A stretch of 64,000 nucleotides of DNA from Histomonas meleagridis 2922-C6/04-290x (Eukaryota; Protista; Parabasalia), in assembly GCA_020184695.1 (NCBI GenBank), contig JAANOX010000108.1, forward strand, positions 1 through 64,000, in the 5' to 3' direction. Positions within the stretch are counted from its first letter, which is position 1. Each line of letters begins with the position of its first letter. Positions 26,163 through 59,150 of this stretch are shown piece after piece. Below the pieces are notes generated by a model that had not been told where the DNA came from, ran no database searches, and saw only the letters and a program-made list of their open reading frames with translations. Position numbers and translations under genes: made by a program.

Positions 26163-26867
26163 TTGTAAATAAAAATGTATAAATATGCAAACGTCAACAT
26201 GAATATTTAAAATTATTATGTGATAAAAATTCCACTTGAATACATCCTTAAAATTTGAAAAACAATTCTGGCTCTATATTTTTACATTCACAGAAACAAT
26301 TGCATTCACTAAATCAAATACATTTACTAGTTCTAATACTTATAGTGTTTCATTTATATTAAATGAGAACTTGACACTAGCTATAACATTAATTTTTTCT
26401 TTTGAAGTTGCTTAATATATTTATATTTAAAGTTCAGAATCATCAAATGTTGAACTTAATCATAGTATACCAATTGGGATGATGAATACAAGAATTGAAA
26501 AAGATCCGTACACATGTGAAAATCCATTCGTATTAATACCGTGTTGGCCAACACGGTGCATATGGTTATTTACAAGAAAGGTGGAACATGAGTTTGAAAA
26601 TCTCTCTGTAGATTTGTTTCTTAATACACACAATTTCCAGAAGATAGGGATGACAAAACAAGGTTTTTGATAAATCAATTATTTTATCATTTTATTTTTA
26701 ATTTTAAATATAAAAGTTTTTAAATTGTTGTTAATAACTCACTTCGAATCCTGCTCCGAATTTATCATCAATCATGCAATGCATTTAATATTTTCTATGA
26801 GATCTTGCAACACCAAATTTTGATTAGAATTAACGTACCCATTCACCTCATCTGCGATTTTGTCATT

Positions 26868-29808
26868 ATGGGTGGAAGTGAAAGCCATACAAAAATAATT
26901 TGCGAAGAAAACATACAAATGTTACAAGATTTAGAAGAAATTATTTTTGATTTAGATGAGAAAAATATTGATCGATTGGTTGAATCTTCATTAAATTATT
27001 TTTCAGTAGAATTTCCATATTCTTTCTATCATATCATTTGCAGAATTGTTTATTCATATTTTGTTTCAACAAGCTATGAAGAATTATGTTTTAAGTATTT
27101 AAAATCTATTGAAAAAAAGTCAAGTTATAATATCATCAATATTTTTACTCAGTTTTTATTAAAAATTAATAGTCAAGAATCAAATTATCTACTCGAAAAA
27201 ATGATTGAAGATGAATTAATTGATCCAAATATTATTCAACATGAAAACAATCCATATTTTATACATAATTTTACAGAAAATATTTTACAGCGATCTAAAA
27301 GACTTATATATCAAATTGAAGAAAAATTTCAAAAAAATGGTTTTGAACTTCACAAAAAGTACGTCAAAGAAGGACATAATCCAAATGAAATTGCAAGAAT
27401 AATTCGAAATGATGAAATAGAAAAACTTCAAGAGATATCATCACAAACAAATTTTGATTTTAACCAAACAATTAAGCCATCACTTTATGAAAAGTGTTCA
27501 TTCATTAATAAAGAAGATGTTACATTAATTGCTTATGCAGCATTTTTTTCAGCAGAAAAATGTTTTAAATATTTACTTATAAATGGCTCTGATATAGAAA
27601 ACACAGGAAAATATGCTGTTGCGAGTGGAAATGAAGAAATTATTCACTTATGTGAACAAAATCATTCATCTTTTCAAAATGCATATGAAACAGCAATTGA
27701 ATTTCATCGAAATGATATCTTTAAATATATTTATGAAAAGAAATTCGAAGAAATTTATAATTTAGAAGTATTAGGAAAAGAATGTATTTTACATGATAAT
27801 TTTAATCTTTTTTCATTTTTAGTAAAAGAAGGAATGAAAATTAATAATACTTTTATCAATACCTCAATCATAACAGGAAATATATTTATTTTTCAATGTT
27901 TCCCAAAAAAAATTCAATAAATTTTTTGGAAATTTCAGGTTTCTCTGGTAATAAAGAATTTTATAATTACCTTATTAAACATAAATATATTAATTTAAAA
28001 CAAAATGTTTGAAAATTTTATTGAAAATTTTACAAAATAATTTAATATTTTAAAACATAATTTAGCGTTTTTTAAAAATATTTGCATTATTCTTAAATGC
28101 ATCTCAAAGAGGTTATTTAGAAATCGTTCAATTACTTCTTGAACAAGAAGGAATTGATATTAATGCTAAAAATATTTTTTTGTTTTATATAATATTTATT
28201 TTAATAATTTTGGATTTCAAAATAATATTTGGAAATTATTTAAATTATTTTGGACAGCACTTATTTGTGCATCTAGAGAAGGTCATACAGAAATAGTTAA
28301 ATTACTTCTTGAACAAGAAGGAATTGATATTAATGCTGATGATATTTATTTGTTTTATTTGAAATTTATTTTAATAATTTTATATTTCAAAATAATATAA
28401 GGAAATTATTTAAATTATTTAGAACAGCACTTCTGATAGCATCTGAATATGGTCATACAGAAACAGTTAAATTTCTTCTTGAACAAGAAGGAATTGATAT
28501 TAATGCTAAAAATATTTATTTGTTTTATTTAAAATTTATTTTAATAATTTGATATTTCAAAATAATATTTGGAAATTATTTATAATATTTAATACAGCAC
28601 TTATGTTTTCATCTTATAATGGTCATACAGAAATAGTCAGATTACTTCTTGAACAAAAAGGAATTGATATTAATGCTAAAAATATTTATTTATTTTATTT
28701 AAAACTTATTTTAATAATTTTTAATTTCAAAATAATATTTGGAAATTATTTAAATTATTTAAAACAGCACTTATGTTGGCATCTGCAAATGGTCATACAG
28801 AAATAGTTAAATTTCTTCTTGAACAAGAAGGAATTGATATTAATGCTAAAGATATTTATTTGTTTTATATAATATTTAATTTGATAAATTAAAATTTCAA
28901 TAATATATTTGGAAATTATATAAATTATTTAGAACAGCACTTATTGAAGCATCCTATGAATGTCATACAGAAATATTTAAATTACTTCTTGAACAAGAAG
29001 GAATTGATATTAATGCTAAAGGTATTTATTTGTTTTATTTAATATTTATTTTAATAATTTCATATTTCAAAATAATAATTGGAAATTATTTAAATTATTT
29101 GATACAGCACTTATATCTGCATCTTCAAAAGGATATATAGAAACAGTTAAATTACTTCTTGAACAAGAAGGAATTGATATTAATGCTAAAGGTATTTATT
29201 TTTTTTTATTTATTATCTGTTTTAATAATTTAATATTCCAAAATAATATTTGGAAATTGTTTAAATTATTTAATACAGCACTTATTTGTGCATCTAGAGA
29301 AGGTCATACAGAAACAGTTAAATTACTTCTTGAACAAGAAGGAATTGATATTAATGCTAAAAATATTTATTTGTTATATTTTATATTTATTTTAATAATT
29401 TTGGATTTCAAAATAATATTTGGAAATTATTTAAATTATTTTGGACAGCACTTATTTGTGCATCTAGAGTAGGTCATACAGAAATAGTTAAATTACTTCT
29501 TGAACAAGAAGGAATTGATATTAATGCTGATGATATTTATTTGTTTTATTTTATATTTATTTTAATAATTTTGGATTTCAAAATAATATTTGGAAATTAT
29601 TTAAATTATTTTATACAGCACTTATTTATGCATCTTGGAATGGTTATACAGAAATAGTTAAATTACTTCTTGAACAAGAAGGAATTGATATTAATGCTAA
29701 AGATATTTATTTGTTTTATTTTATATTTATTTTAATAATTTTTAATTTCAAAATAATATTTGGAAATTATTTAAATTATTTTATACAGAACTTATGATGG
29801 CATCTTGA
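26868..29808 (+). CDS. DUF3447 plus ankyrin-repeat protein whose repeats are interrupted by 44 17-nt elements (decoded ~730 aa); a 1-nt frameshift at the A8 run 27905-27912
   Basis: ATG 26868 (MGGSES, possible N-myristoylation; TCATT initiator-like motif just upstream). DUF3447-type YAAFFSAEKCFKYLL…YAVASGNEEII…AIEFHRNDIF. Ten 29-codon ankyrin cores are followed by TELMMAS* at 29785-29808. The hairpins are restored only after removing the 17-mers. Confidence 0.7.
28004..29784 (+). repeat. Tandem array of 170-nt units: 87-nt ankyrin core plus an 83-nt spacer made of 5 single codons and 4 x 17-nt elements
   Basis: Thr codons (ACA) start at 28254, 28424, 28594, 28764, 28934, 29104, 29275, 29445, 29615 and 29785, a period of 170 nt (one of 171 from a T9 run). 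A lead-in spacer at 28004-28086 has the same 20-nt register. Confidence 0.95.
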
Positions 29809-34263: not shown

Positions 34264-35915
34264 TCATTTTGAAAACAATAATTTTAGTTTTGTTTTCCCT
34301 GAAACGTTATTTGTTTGCGTGGCTAGATCATTTTTTATTATATCTGAATTTTTGTTCTCGTTTACATCATAAAATTGAAATTTATTTTCATTTTCGAGCT
34401 GCTCATCTGAAATTAATGTATAATTTGGTAAAAAGGTTGTGTAGTCTTTATCATTTTCTGATCCATATAACCAGTTAATTGTTACAGAACCTTTTGCACG
34501 AAGTAATTTAACTATTTCTGTATGACCATTTGAATATGCATATTCATATGCTGATTTAAATATGTTGAATAATTCCCGAACAGTATATTTTAACAAAAAA
34601 TTCTCAATATCAATGCAAAATAAAAAAATCAAATTACATATTATTTAAATAAATGCTAAATAAAAGCAATAAACATCTTTTGTATCAACATCAATTCCTT
34701 CTTGTGCAAGAAGTATTTTAACAAGTTTTATGTTACCAGTTTTACATGCCCAAATAAGTGGTGTATCAAATAATTTAAATAATCTTCAAATATTATTTAT
34801 AAAATTATTAATAAAAGAAACGCCAAATACTTGACAGAAATATACCTAGTGTTGATATCAATTTCTTTCTGCTTTAAAAGATATTTAAAAAGTTCCAAAT
34901 TTTCTGATTTTGTAGAGCTAATCAAGAGATTTTTTGGTATTCGATTGGTTTGAAGAAAATATTTAACAAGATATATATTTCCGTTTGTTGCTGATTCATT
35001 TATAATGTTATTATTTATTTTCATGCCCATCTTTTCTAAAAATAAAAGAATTTCATAATTATAATACCTTACGCACTTTTCTCCTAATTCTTCTAATTTA
35101 TTAATTTTTTCTATTTTATTTTCATAAATATATTTAAAGATATCATTTCGATGAAATTCAATTGCAGCTTCATATGCACCTTCAAATGTTGAATGATTTT
35201 GTTCACATAAATGAATGATTTCTTCATTTCCACCTGCAACTACAAATCTACCTGTATTTTTAATATTTGCGTCATTCATAAGTAAATATTTAAAACAATT
35301 AATTGATCCAAAAAATGCTGCGAAATCAATTAAAGTAACTAATTTTGTCTATCATAATCTGTTGGATTAACATATGAACATCTTTCATAAAGTGATGGTT
35401 CAATTTTTTGATTATAATCAAAATCATTTTGTGATGATATTTCTTGAAGTTTTTCTATTTTATCATATCTAATTATTTTTGCAATTTTATTTGTATTTAC
35501 TCCTTCTTTAATATATTTCTTATGAAGTTTGAAATCATTATTTGAAAGCTCTTTATATGTTTTATTCGTATGACTTAAATAATTATATTTAATTAATTTG
35601 TAATGCATAAAGTATTCTGAATTCATATTTTCAGTAATATTTTTATTGATTACATTTCGATTTATCATTTTCTAAATAATGAATGTATCTGTCAGCTGAA
35701 TTCCATTTTGCACAAAATGAAGAATAAACTAACTGACTAACAATTAAAATAAATGAGTATGGAAAATTAAAATCATATAATTTTATTGTTTGGTCAATTG
35801 CAAGATTAAAGTTCTCTTTATATAAATTAATTATGATTTGTTCAAGATTAATTTCGATATATTGAGGCTCATTTCCATCACCATTTTTTTTAGAATTTAT
35901 TTCGCCATTTAACAT
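34264..35915 (-). pseudogene. DUF3447 plus ankyrin gene with two element-containing spacers; N-terminal half frameshifted or partly deleted
   Basis: ORF pieces 35643-35915, 35339-35668, 34797-35279 and 34264-34632, with DUF3447 motifs (FAAFFGSINCFKYLL, VVAGGNEEII, AIEFHRNDIF). Ankyrin cores TPLIWACKTGN… and SAYEYAYSNGHTEIVKLL are separated by 80-nt and 123-nt spacers. Confidence 0.7.
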
Positions 35916-42899: not shown

Positions 42900-44030
42900 T
42901 ATTATCACTTTGGCTTATAAACGGTAGTTTTGTGAGATTGTTCTTTGGTAACAAAAAGACAACTATTGTCTTGGAGGATTCAATTACACAATGCGTTACG
43001 AGCAAATTGGATATTTACGGATCACACTTGAACTGGAGGATCTCAAGCTAGTCACCATAAAGCTAGGTGATATTTGTAACTTAAAGCCTCAGATAATAAC
43101 GAAAGCATTGAATAAATTTTACAAAAAAAAAAAAAAAAAAATCCCATAGGTCTTCAGAAAAAAACTCACTGTCGAGAAAAAGAACAATGTTATCATTCCC
43201 TCAAAAGCTCAAAAAATGAGGTTAATGGTAAATTTTCGAGATCAATATTTAATGCAGACGAAACAGGTTCTTCAGAGTGGATGGACAAAAAAACGAGAAA
43301 TATGGTTGTACCAAAGCATGGAGATGATATAAGAATCACAAGGTCAAAAGAGCATCAAAATTACAAACAATTTTGGGTTGCATTTCTGCAGCTGGTGATG
43401 TGTTAACACCTGTTCTTATCCATTCAAGAAAGACAGTTGACGAAGAAGTTTATTTAAAAGGTTTAAGGGAGGGAACAGATGTTATTTTGAGATATTCAGA
43501 ATCAGGTTATATTACTTCATCCATCTTTGAAGAGTGGATAGGAAATTTTTTTGTTAAATTTGTCAATGATACAAGAAATGCATTGTATCTAGAGGATGAA
43601 GAGGCAGTTTTATTTCTTGATAGGTGCAGTTCTCATACATCAGATGAGGTGAAACAAATATTAGCTAACAACAAAATTAAAATGATTACGTTCCCACCAC
43701 ATGCCTCGCATATTTCCCAAATGCTAGATTTAGTAACTTTTGGTGTGTTAAAACATGTTAAGCCAACAATTAAGACTCCATTTAAAAATAATTCACAAGC
43801 ACACCATATACACAAATATTCAAAGGCATTTGAGACTCAACAATATCTTCAAACAATAGATCGGCTTTTTTGAGAGCAGGTTTTTTTTTTTAATACTTCA
43901 ATATTTTCATACAAGTTTCAAATTGATGAAAATCAAATACGAAAAATAATAGAAGAATCAAAATTAATATCTGAAGAAGAATTTCAGCATCAATTTTCAA
44001 ATGCAAGAAAGAAAGAGTTTGGATTCATTC
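42900..44030 (+). mobile_element. pogo/Tigger-type (DDE_1) transposase pseudogene
   Basis: IFNADETG (~43245-43270), TILGCISAAG, AVLFLDRCSSH, FPPHASHISQMLDLVTFGVLK; multiple stops and frameshifts. Confidence 0.8.
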
Positions 44031-44572
44031 TTTTGATTTTTAATACTCTCTTTAAGTGATATATATTGTATTTTGTGATGAATTCATACTAACATTGATC
44101 CAACAAATAATATTATAAAATTTAAGAAATATTATTTATTGATAAAGATATTTTCGTTTCATTTTGGAATTTCACCACTTTTTCGAAAAACGGTTAAACA
44201 CATTTAGACTGGAATCTGTATTAAGTTATCTTTCAATTTTTTTTCAAAATTTCTCCAATATCTCTCTATTACTTTATTTTAAATATTTTTTACAATATTT
44301 TGAGGTTATTTATTTCATTTTATCACTTATATCCATTCCTCTCTATTCATTTTAAGTTCGAATTCATCAATTTCATTTAAAAAGTTTAAATATTTATGAA
44401 CTCTTTATTCATTTCAAGTTTCATTTTTTTATAATTGAATTGTTTTTAATCGTTTTTCATTCAATTTACTGGAAGTTCAACTTTGAATTTTTTCAAAAGC
44501 TTGATTCTCAATTGATAATATTCGTTTCAATTTCTGGTTGGAGGTGAAGAATTGATGTTTGTGAGTTTTGGA

Positions 44573-47500
44573 TTAGATTTTTTCACGGAGTAATTTTACT
44601 ATTTTTGTATAACTTTTTTGTTTTGCTATTTGAATTGCAGTCAAATATTATTAAAACATATTTCAAATTATTAAAACATATTTCAAATTATTAAAACATA
44701 TTTCAAATTATTAAAACATATATTAAATTATTCGAATGAATAGTTTTTGCATTAACATCAATTCCTTTATCTAAAAGTAATTTTACTATTTCTATATTAT
44801 TATTTCTAACTGCTATATGAAGTGCTGTTTCAAATTATTAAAACATATTTCAAAATATTAAAACATATTTCAAATTATTCAAATGAATATTAAATTATTC
44901 GAATTAATAGTTTTTGCGTTAATATCAATTCCTTTATCTAAAAGTAATTTTACAATTTCTATATTATTATTTTCAACTGCTATATGAAGTGCTGTTTCAA
45001 ATTATTAAAACATATATAAAACTATTAAAACATATATAAAACTATTAAAACATATATAAAACTATTAAAACATATATAAAACTATTAAATCATATATAAA
45101 ACTATTAAAACATATTCTAAATTATTAAAACAGATATCAAATTATTAAAACATATTTCAAATTATTAAAACATATATAAAACTATTAAAACATATTTCAA
45201 ATTATTAAAACATATTTCAAATTATTAAAATATATTATAAATTATTAAAATATATTATAAATTATTAAAACATATATTAAATTATTATAACATATTCTAA
45301 ATTATTAAAATATATTATAAATTATTTGAATGAATATATTTTGCATTAACATCAATTCCTTTATCTAAAAGTAATTTTACTATTTCTATATTATTATTTC
45401 TAACTGCTATATGAAGTGCTGTTTCAAATTATTAAAACATATTTCAAATGATTAAAACATATTATAAATTATTAAAACAGATATCAAATTATTAAAACAT
45501 ATATAAAACTATTAAATCATATATAAAACTATTAAAACATATTCTAAATTATTAAAACAGATATCAAATTATTAAAACATATATAAAACTATTAAAACAT
45601 ATATAAAACTATTAAAACATATTTCAAATGATTAAAACATATTATAAATTATTAAAACAGATCCAAAATTATTAAAACATATTTCAAATTATTAAAACAT
45701 ATTTCAAATTATTAAAACATATTTCAAATTATTAAAATATATTATAAATTATTAAAACATATATTAAATTATTATAACATATTCTAAATTATTTGAATGA
45801 ATATATTTTGCATTAACATCAATTCCTTTATCTAAAAGTAATTTTACTATTTCTATATTATTATTTCTAACTGCTATATGAAGTGCTGTTTCAAATTATT
45901 AAAACATATTTCAAATGATTAAAACATATTATAAATTATTAAAACAGATATCAAATTATTAAAACATATTTCAAATTATTAAAACATATTTCAAATTATT
46001 AAAACATATTCTAAATTATTAAAGCAGATCCAAAATTAATAAAACATATTTCAAATTATTAAAACATATATCAAATTATTAAAGCAGATCCAAAATTATT
46101 AAAACATATTTCAAATTATTAAAACATATATAAAATTATTAAAACATATTATAAATTATTAAAACATATTCTAAATTATTAAAACATATTCTAAATTATT
46201 AAAACATATTTCAAATTATTCAAATGAATATTTTTTGCATTAACATCGATTCCTTCTTTATCTAAAAGTAATTTTACTATTTCTATATTATTATTTTCAA
46301 CAGCTATATGAAGTGCTGTTTCAAATTATTAAAACATATTTCAAATTATTAAAACATATAACAAATTATTATAATATATTTCAAATTATTATAACATATA
46401 TCAAATTATTATAACATATATCAAATTATTATAACATATATCAAATTATTATAACATATATCAAATTATTATAACATATATCAAATTATTATAACATATA
46501 TCAAATTATTAAAACATATTCTAAATTATTAAAACATATATTAAATTATTATAACATATTCTAAATTATTTGAATGAATAATTTTTGCATTAACATCAAT
46601 TCCTTTTTGTTCCAAAACATATTTCACAAGTTCAACATATCCTGATTCTGAAGCAAATGGCAAAATATTTTTTGGAGTTTGGTTATTTTGAAGGAAATAT
46701 TGAACGAGATATAAATTTCCATTCCTTGCTGATTCATTTATATTATAAGCATTAACATTAATTCCTTTTTCTTCCAAAAATGCTAAAATTTCATAATTAT
46801 CTTTTTTGATACAAAAACTTACTAAATCATTTGTATCTTCAGACATTTTCAATATTGATTGTGTTTTTTCTAAATTATTTTCATAAAGATATTTAAAAAT
46901 ATCATTTCGATGAAATTCAATTGCTGTTTCATATGCATTATCAAATGATGAATGATTTTGTTCGCATAAATAAATGATTTCAAGATTTCCACCAGCAACT
47001 GCATATTTACCTGTGTTATCTATTTTAGAACCATTCATAAGTAAATATTTAAAACATTTAGTTGACCCAAAAAATGCTGCATAATCAATTAATGTAACAT
47101 TATCTTTATTAATGAATGAACATCTTTCATAAAGTGATGGCTCAATTTTCTGGTTAAAATCAAAGTTTGTTTGTGATGACATTTCTTGAAGTTTTTCTAT
47201 TTCATCATTTCGAATTATTTTTGCAATTTCATTTGGATTATGTGCTTCTTTAATTAATTTCTTATGAAGCTCCCATTCATTCCTCGAAAGTTCTTCATAA
47301 TTTTTTTGAATATATTCAGTAAATTTATAATCCCCTAATTCGTTAATTATTTCATTTGGCATGTATTGCACAAAATATCCTTGAGAAGCAATCGAGTTTT
47401 TTATATTTTTAATGATTTTTTTATCAAGTAAATTATCTTCAATCATTTCTGCAAGAAGATAACATGATTCTTGTGTATTTTTACAAACAAGGAAATGTCC

Positions 47501-47791
47501 ATATATATCAAAAATGTCAATTTCTTTATGAATGTTCATTTCTATTTTTTTGATTTCTTTAAGAAAATCCAAATATAAATTAATATCTTTCATTCCCATG
47601 ATAGCAATTGCATATGTAATCCTAACAATAATTAAATTAAAAGATAATGGAAAAATATTATCAAATTTACTTATGATTGATTTTGAAGTTTGAGTAATGT
47701 TTTCTTTGTTTAAATTGATTATTAAATTCTTGATATATATTAATTTTTCCAATTCGTTTTCATGGGTTTTGCTTTTTGCTTGAGATTCCAT
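44573..47791 (-). CDS. DUF3447 plus ankyrin-repeat protein with 75 17-nt elements in six hairpin loops (decoded 647 aa)
   Basis: ATG 47791 (MESQ). The frame is continuous to 46580, then runs of 13, 17, 19, 17, 4 and 5 [17-nt + codon] units alternate with ankyrin cores (TALHIAV.NNNIEIVKLLLDK.GID.NAK), ending …LLREKI* at 44575-44573. (3219 - 75x17)/3 = 648 codons with no internal stop. Confidence 0.8.
44642..46579 (-). repeat. 20-nt period arrays (ATATGTTTTAATAATTT + variable triplet) nested in ankyrin hairpins
   Basis: Blocks 46579-46320 (260 nt), 46229-45890 (340), 45802-45423 (380), 45335-44996 (340), 44908-44829 (80) and 44741-44642 (100) are all exact multiples of 20. Confidence 0.95.
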
Positions 47792-50059: not shown

Positions 50060-50370
50060 ATGGTTTTGAGCTTACAATAAATATCCTCCTTTTCAATATC
50101 AATTCCTTCTTGTTCAAGAAGGATTTTAGCAATTTCCACTTGGTAATGAGTTGATGCACGCATAAGAGCTGTATAAAATAATTTGAATGTTATCCATTTA
50201 TTATTTATAAATATCAAATTTTAAAAATGTAATTTTTATTTTAAATATAAATATTTTTGTCATTGATATTAATTCCTTTTTGGGCAAGGAGTAATTGAAC
50301 TATATCTAATTTACCATTAATTGTTGCAAACATAAGTGCTGTGTTAAATAATATATATTATCACAATAGT
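50060..50370 (-). pseudogene. Two-repeat ankyrin remnant joined by an intact four-element spacer
   Basis: TALMFATINGKLDIVQLLLAQKGININDK, an 83-nt spacer decoding to N-K-D-G-Y, then TALMRASTHYQVEIAKILLEQEGIDIEK. Confidence 0.75.
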
Positions 50371-58645: not shown

Positions 58646-58789
58646 AAATAAATATCATGTATTTAACTTTTTAAGTAAAAATAGAGTGTATCATTTCAAG
58701 ACCTTGTTTGGAAATAGCTGTTCTCAGTGTTTTATATGTTAAATTTAAAAAAAAAATGATTTTTATAAAAATGAAAATATAAATTTGAT

Positions 58790-59150
58790 ATTTGTTTCAA
58801 TTATTTGAAACTGCACTTATTTTAAAGCGTCTAAAAATAACCATATCAAAATAGTTAAAATACTTCTGAATTGCAAATATATTAATATTAATTCTAAAAG
58901 CGTTTATTTGTTTCATTTAATATTTATTTTAATAATTTTATATCGAAATAATATTTGGAAATTATTTAAATTATTTGAAACAGCACTTATTTTAGCATCT
59001 AGATGTGGTTTTTTAGAAATAGTTAAATTACTTTCTGAACAATAAGGAATTGATATTAATGCTAAATCTATTTATTTGTTTTATTTAATATTTATTTTAA
59101 TAATTTTCTATTTCAAAATAATATTTGGAAATTATTTAAATTATTTAAAA
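58790..59150 (+). pseudogene. Decayed ankyrin-repeat remnant with two four-element spacers
   Basis: Cores carry frameshifts and a TAA. Spacers decode to S-N-Y-G-E (third element only 15 nt) and S-N-S-G-K. Confidence 0.7.

Follow-up and report, generated by a model that had tools for sequence, protein, structure and literature searches.

Known coding minisatellites have unit lengths divisible by three, and the question raised by a 20-nt minisatellite in the poultry parasite Histomonas meleagridis is whether it is nevertheless the amplified part of a coding sequence, built from intervening elements and single codons. The repeat lies in an ankyrin gene that is not among the called genes of contig JAANOX010000108.1 (assembly GCA_020184695.1), and was examined within a window comprising the whole stretch of 64,000 nucleotides analysed. 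This assembly, of the attenuated strain, is one of the two H. meleagridis genomes of PMC8529796 (ONT plus Illumina, 43 Mb, 28% GC, few introns). The window is AT-rich (16-37% GC in 2-kb bins) and carries long uninterrupted eukaryotic ORFs, including a 2311-aa mTOR-like kinase, a tubulin-tyrosine ligase, a histone deacetylase and a DRG GTPase.

The initial annotation of the locus, made from the sequence alone, proposed that every 20-nt unit is a 17-nt element plus one codon, that removal of the elements on the minus strand yields six stop-free loops in a 647-aa frame, that one unit equals one residue so that gain or loss of units causes no frameshift, and that the whole is a slippage- or recombination-driven generator of variable-length, antibody-like binding loops, formally like a repeat/spacer array. 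The observation itself was confirmed, whereas the interpretation built on it is supported only in part.

Architecture of the locus

On the minus strand, a 426-codon ORF (47821-46541, with its ATG at 47791) encodes an N-terminal domain, DUF3447 and ankyrin (ANK) repeats, with Ank_2 and DUF3447 recognised by profile search, and stops 13 codons into the tandem repeat. Tandem Repeats Finder (TRF) reported a period of 20 and 77.5 copies. Anchoring on the coding motifs ...AATGCAAAA and ACAGCACTTCAT... resolved six arrays, each of 3+20n bases, which interrupt six ANK repeats at the hairpin tip (Table 1). Splitting each array into a first codon followed by units of 17 nt plus a codon returned exactly the six loops listed in the initial annotation. 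In total there are 75 elements, all exactly 17 nt, without partial units or indels. The segments between arrays are 87 or 84 nt long, stop-free, and read TALHIAV(E/R)NNNIEIVKLLLDK(E)GID(V/I)NAK. The complete reading, from the ATG at 47791 to the terminal TAA, sums to 647 aa.

Table 1. Coordinates of the ankyrin gene and of related features in the window.
Position	Strand	Feature	Description
46583..47791	-	First coding segment	ATG to ...GIDVNAK, 403 codons; N-terminal domain, DUF3447 and first ankyrin repeats; the plain ORF runs on to a TAA at 46541 inside array 1
46320..46582	-	Array 1	263 nt; slot-1 codon ATT plus 13 units; loop IRNRDDDDDDEVEE
46233..46319	-	ANK segment 2	29 aa, TALHIAVENNNIEIVKLLLDKEGIDVNAK
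45890..46232	-	Array 2	343 nt; AAT plus 17 units; loop NERRIYEWDEWREEDIEE
45806..45889	-	ANK segment 3	28 aa; identical in DNA to segments 4 and 6
45423..45805	-	Array 3	383 nt; TAT plus 19 units; loop YRNIEEEWIEYYDRYYDIEE
45339..45422	-	ANK segment 4	28 aa
44996..45338	-	Array 4	343 nt; TAT plus 17 units; loop YIRNIIEEYEDRYYYYYE
44912..44995	-	ANK segment 5	28 aa; differs from segment 3 at five bases: two synonymous codon changes (ATA>ATT, AAT>AAC), one V>I change and one R>E change
44829..44911	-	Array 5	83 nt, the canonical hairpin size of the family; ACT plus 4 units; loop TNEEE
44745..44828	-	ANK segment 6	28 aa
44642..44744	-	Array 6	103 nt; ACT plus 5 units; loop TNEEEL
44573..44641	-	Last coding segment	TAIQIAKQKSYTKIVKLLREKI plus the TAA stop (44573-44575)
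28171-28253		83-nt hairpin	Same 83-nt layout as array 5, here and following
28254-29785	+	ANK array	170-nt period: 87 coding bases plus 83 (5 codons + 4 x 17)
58780-59150		Decayed ANK/element fragment	In-frame TAA and a 15-nt element

Each inter-array segment matched the Pfam Ank profile (PF00023) with E-values of 2.7e-10 to 1e-9 over positions 4-31 of 33, so that the contiguous DNA lacks exactly the five hairpin positions of the 33-residue repeat, located between NAK and T-A/P-L. The two short arrays supply 5 and 6 residues at this site, while arrays 1-4 give 14-20, that is, insertions at the tip.

Variation within the 20-nt unit

The 17-mer occurs 91 times in the window at up to 3 mismatches, against 10.8 expected, a value reached in 0 of 100 shuffles. 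No slot holds a stop codon, but the units of this gene are recent, near-identical copies: the 75 slots contain only 9 codon types in 24 distinct unit types, and one unit occurs 17 times (17 of 69 inner units are identical). The absence of stops and the perfect periodicity therefore carry little independent weight. A stronger test is provided by the per-position entropy of the unit, which is 1.46, 1.12 and 1.23 bits at the three positions predicted by the flanking exon frame to be the codon, and at most 0.70 at any of the 17 element positions. The chance that the three most variable of 20 positions are those predicted is 1 in 1140.

The arrays grew by tandem duplication, as shown by runs of identical units (D6, Y5, E3) and by the comparison of exons with their arrays. 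Segments 3, 4 and 6 are identical in DNA, while their arrays have 19, 17 and 5 units, pointing to fast array turnover; differences in the other two internal segments include synonymous changes and one 3-nt indel. The loops are low-complexity and acidic, with 26 E, 11 D, 13 Y, 9 R and 9 I among 81 residues (counted by hand).

The same layout in other loci and species

In the plus-strand ANK array of the window, slot 4 is GGA, corresponding to the canonical hairpin Gly of the ANK consensus, in 9 of 9 repeats, and slot 1 is N, D or G. Shifted registers of the element were rejected, since they turn this conserved GGA into AGA or TGG. Contigs of other species from gut metagenomes, with N-terminal domains 43-51% identical, keep the 17-nt spacing with different element sequences and give D-x-x-G-x hairpins in the same register: contig L001 reads D-H-D-G-S followed by TPLL, L002 reads D-R-A-G-Y, and L008 reads D-H-F-G-N, D-H-E-G-R and D-Y-D-G-K, with Gly as GGA or GGT and Asp as GAT or GAC. 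The triplets are therefore codons under amino-acid selection, and it is the 17-nt length that is conserved, not the element sequence.

Long loops are not unique to this gene. A paralog in the virulent-strain assembly (L003, 380-1700), belonging to the same TALHIAV/TPLHLAV subfamily, has hairpins with 14, 9, 7 and 5 elements. Its 35 elements all differ, yet they align without a gap at 17 columns with the consensus ATTTATTTTAATAATTT; 33 of 35 start with a purine, and T2, T7, T8 and T17 are nearly invariant. The unit amplified in the window's gene, ATATGTTTTAATAATTT, is two mismatches from that consensus. By manual count, the 44 slots of L003 hold no stop, include GCG, GGG, GGA, GCA, CGA and TGG, and are about 30% GC, against about 9% GC in the elements of its first loop. 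Neighbouring elements there are sometimes near-duplicates carrying the same codon (TAT, TAT; GGA, GGA), the fossil trace of tandem duplication, and one further hairpin has three elements and two adjacent codons (TTT CGA), which is an exact element loss. The persistence of 14 consecutive elements of exactly 17 nt argues that long loops can be kept and decoded.

Representation in RNA

Evidence on RNA is indirect and rests on word-share searches of sequencing runs that are only presumed to be RNA; no spliced read or contig was seen for this gene, and reads were not mapped to it. Of 121 words sampled in 44560-46582, RNA-labelled runs held a share of 0.24-0.30, compared with 0.68-0.70 in DNA runs. 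Among the distinct 31-mers of this region, 17.7% are exon-internal, 19.6% span a junction and 62.7% are array-internal. Transcripts ending at or before the apparent stop at 46541 had been named beforehand as an outcome that would contradict the proposed reading, but the region beyond this stop is represented in the RNA-labelled runs. The RNA share nevertheless exceeds the 0.177 ceiling for fully processed RNA, by 3.5 sd for the best run, so that some element-bearing RNA sequence exists, although well below the DNA level. This pattern fits mature mRNA plus pre-mRNA, but also fits partial processing, DNA carry-over or paralogous arrays, and thus leaves undecided whether the elements are absent from mature RNA.

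The exact 416-aa product of the plain ORF is not on record, and a search of the protein collection with the last 100 aa of the first segment, intended to find RNA-derived fragments continuing into a processed loop, found no same-species protein fragment. A processed-junction DNA pattern sought in metagenome contigs returned as its only hit an ordinary bacterial ankyrin gene, which is irrelevant here.

Interpretation of the arrays

The explanation favoured here, with moderate confidence, is that the locus is the 3' two-thirds of an unannotated H. meleagridis ankyrin gene (47791 to 44573, minus strand), whose hairpin tips, like those of its paralogs, are written one codon at a time. The codons would be separated by fixed-length, AU-rich 17-nt elements (consensus RTTTNTTTTAATAATTT), placed between whole codons, that must be removed for the frame to continue. 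In four of the six hairpins, the unit of element plus following codon would have been amplified in tandem to 13-19 copies by replication slippage or unequal exchange, creating a minisatellite that stays in frame because 17 of every 20 bases are non-coding. After removal, each unit would add one residue to a surface loop, giving acidic, aromatic insertions of 14-20 residues and junction peptides such as TNEEETALHIAVR. The analysis itself demonstrates the anatomy, the codon nature of the triplets, the family membership of the element and the origin by tandem duplication, while removal at the RNA level, not tested on this gene, and translation of the long loops are inferences. With 75 elements, even 99% removal per element would leave only about half of the transcripts fully processed. 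Of the claims in the initial annotation, the composition of the unit and the in-frame gain or loss of residues are supported; excision, unit-number polymorphism between cells or strains, and a binding or antibody-like role are either unsupported or untested, and the repeat/spacer analogy is only formal. The loops could equally be a neutral by-product of a slippage-prone repeat that is tolerated because it stays in frame.

Among the alternatives, the arrays may be young casualties, expanded as an ordinary slippage-prone minisatellite and no longer fully processed, so that the gene yields only the 416-aa product or no stable product and the downstream segments are on their way to decay. The stop within array 1, the lack of annotation, the element-bearing words in RNA runs, the low complexity of the loops and the presence of a decayed ANK/element fragment in the same window are compatible with this view. 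It is considered doubtful, as all five downstream ANK segments and the terminal segment are intact and in one frame, with differences that include synonymous changes and one 3-nt indel, no element is partial, slot-specific variation is hard to explain in dead DNA, and L003 keeps long loops with diverged but exactly 17-nt elements. Translational bypass, in which the elements would stay in the mRNA and ribosomes would hop 17 nt after each codon, appears very unlikely: although the fixed length, the absence of splice signals and the existence of element-bearing RNA would suit it, 75 consecutive hops would be needed, successive slots differ freely without matching take-off and landing codons, no conserved structure was found in canonical spacers, and every element carries TAA triplets. 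Direct translation through the arrays was rejected, because the TAATAA inside every unit blocks one frame, T+GA/AG/AA at the unit junction blocks another, and the 20-nt period cycles through all three.

The adaptive generator suggested by the initial annotation is speculative and regarded as unlikely. In this view, unit number would change fast enough between cells, clones or strains to diversify binding loops under selection, like a contingency locus, or near-identical elements would be joined in alternative ways in the RNA, any element start to any later element end, so that one ankyrin gene yields a population of proteins with hairpin loops of many lengths. This would be a new way to diversify a binding surface, resting on an excision mechanism other than the canonical GT-AG spliceosome pathway. 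Arrays do differ in length and order between identical exons, any combination of element ends stays in frame by arithmetic, although such alternative joins were not tested, the slots are the variable part of the unit, and the insertion site lies next to the usual ANK binding face. However, only paralogous arrays within the gene were seen to differ, the orthologous locus of the second assembly not having been compared, no partner or function is known, and the 9 codon types, dominated by GAA, GAT and TAT, look like drift of a repeat rather than a selected repertoire.

Mechanism and comparison with known systems

The elements lack the ends of U2-type spliceosomal introns. All 75 start with AT and 74 end with TT (the last ends with AT), while in L003 22 of 35 start with A and 11 with G, a third starting with GT. 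Ultra-short spliceosomal introns, such as those of Stentor (15-16 nt), the Bigelowiella nucleomorph (18-21 nt) and Trichomonas vaginalis type B (23-25 nt; PMC12316389), are likewise very short, U-rich and of a narrow length class. The 5' end RT(T/A)(T/C) resembles the GT(A/T)(C/T) start of type B introns in T. vaginalis, also a parabasalid, and a TAAT motif sits about 7 nt from the 3' end, roughly where the branch A lies in the shortest T. vaginalis introns. TAAT/TAAC-like motifs at positions 9-13 are common but not invariant in L003, which does not settle whether a branch site is present, and lariat formation and dependence on snRNPs were not assayed. In contrast to those introns, the 3' end is TTT rather than AG, the length is fixed at exactly 17, and the elements sit in runs separated by single codons and confined to ankyrin hairpins. 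RNA folding showed no signal beyond shuffled controls in canonical spacers (z 0.06 to 0.87), and z of about -2 in the amplified arrays only, as expected for a semi-palindromic AU repeat; a structure-guided (bulge-helix-bulge-like) cut is therefore not supported, and no known excision machinery is implicated. The preferred reading is RNA-level excision by an unusual, length-measuring splicing route.

The 3-nt microexons of animals and plants are also one codon long and lie in surface loops, but they are isolated, flanked by long canonical introns and dependent on dedicated enhancers, whereas here up to 19 follow each other at 20-nt spacing. Coding minisatellites and contingency loci of surface adhesins and cell-wall proteins share the head-to-tail units, the expansion and contraction by slippage and the length change of a surface-exposed segment without frameshift, but have unit lengths divisible by three. 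Intron gain by tandem duplication likewise creates a new intervening sequence with both of its ends, although the classic model duplicates an exonic AGGT once, while here an existing element plus one codon is amplified many times. Translational bypass elements (T4 gene 60; the byps of Magnusiomyces mitochondria) are short non-coding inserts inside ORFs without splice signals, but are 27-55 nt long, need matched take-off and landing codons and structures, and remain in the mRNA, none of which is seen here. Lamprey VLR, antibody CDR and DGR diversification offers a formal analogy only, that of variable loops on a repeat-protein scaffold, as there are no donor cassettes, no reverse transcriptase and no evidence of somatic change. 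None of the closest systems (ultra-short introns, microexons, coding minisatellites and intron gain by tandem duplication) combines a fixed 17-nt non-GT-AG element, single-codon exons and tandem amplification inside a coding loop. Searches of the available literature found no description of such a system, and the genome paper (PMC8529796) mentions neither ankyrin genes nor these elements.

If the elements are excised, this gene carries 75 intervening sequences in about 1.5 kb, one per codon within the arrays, far denser than any intron layout known to us, and would be, to our knowledge, the first coding minisatellite with a period that is not a multiple of three. The series from the canonical four-element hairpin, through the young arrays of this gene, to the old diverged arrays of L003 shows intervening sequences multiplying by tandem duplication and makes intron gain directly observable. 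The layout also bears on what the excision machinery needs, because fixed length matters more than sequence. From a practical viewpoint, gene models of Histomonas and related gut parabasalids truncate or miss this large ankyrin family, so that proteomic and virulence/attenuation comparisons based on them are incomplete. Models of the family, including those of NCBI for Histomonas, and homologs from gut metagenomes all end just after NAK-D, reading into the first element.

Irregular elements and ankyrin fragments near the locus and in relatives

An A8 run breaks the frame between an ORF and its evident continuation (...FPKK / SINFLEISGFSGNKEFYNYLIKHKYINLKQN), which leads into the 170-nt ANK array, and one extra A would restore the frame; this represents either a homopolymer error of the ONT-based assembly or a real frameshift. 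Within the array itself, one element is 18 nt long, containing a T9 run, while the rest of that repeat stays in register; it is either a homopolymer assembly error or a broken repeat. In the paralog at 34.2-35.3 kb, the first hairpin spacer is 3 nt shorter than canonical, and since the only all-17 parse gives Y-G-F-D with Gly (GGC) at slot 2, the register there is ambiguous. The decayed fragment downstream of the TTL gene, with an in-frame stop, a frameshifted first segment and a 15-nt element, shows what neutral decay of the layout looks like.

Coordinates of the additional features
Sequence	Position (strand)	Feature
Window	26805-27920	ORF whose frame is broken from its evident continuation at the A8 run
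Window	27905-27912	A8 run
Window	29194-29211	18-nt element of the 170-nt array
Window	34765-34850 (-)	Shortened first hairpin spacer
Window	43373-43873 (+)	DDE_1 (pogo-like) transposase fragment, about 0.7 kb beyond the 3' end of the ANK gene
Window	50080-50345 (-)	Small unannotated two-repeat ANK piece between the Arf and PARG genes; canonical 83-nt hairpin reading N-K-D-G-Y
Window	58780-59150 (+)	Decayed ANK/element fragment
Window	58942-58956	15-nt element of this fragment
Window	59043-59045	In-frame TAA of this fragment
L003 (paralog, virulent-strain assembly)	1557-1622	Hairpin with three elements and two adjacent codons (TTT CGA)
L001 (gut metagenome contig)	1840-1870	Contiguous hairpin (NSKN-VMFES-ALMKA)

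The three-element hairpin of L003 is an exact 17-nt element absence relative to the four-element layout, whereas in the metagenome relative L001 the hairpin following the contiguous one carries four 17-nt elements, so that presence or absence varies within a gene. More distant relatives (P0032 and P0034; about 35% identity, with an extra N-terminal region) have mostly contiguous ANK hairpins, yet their models show junk stretches such as YVFNLFFIRTYHHQFNFFIF and C-terminal read-through into AT-rich sequence, which suggests that the elements reach further across parabasalids.
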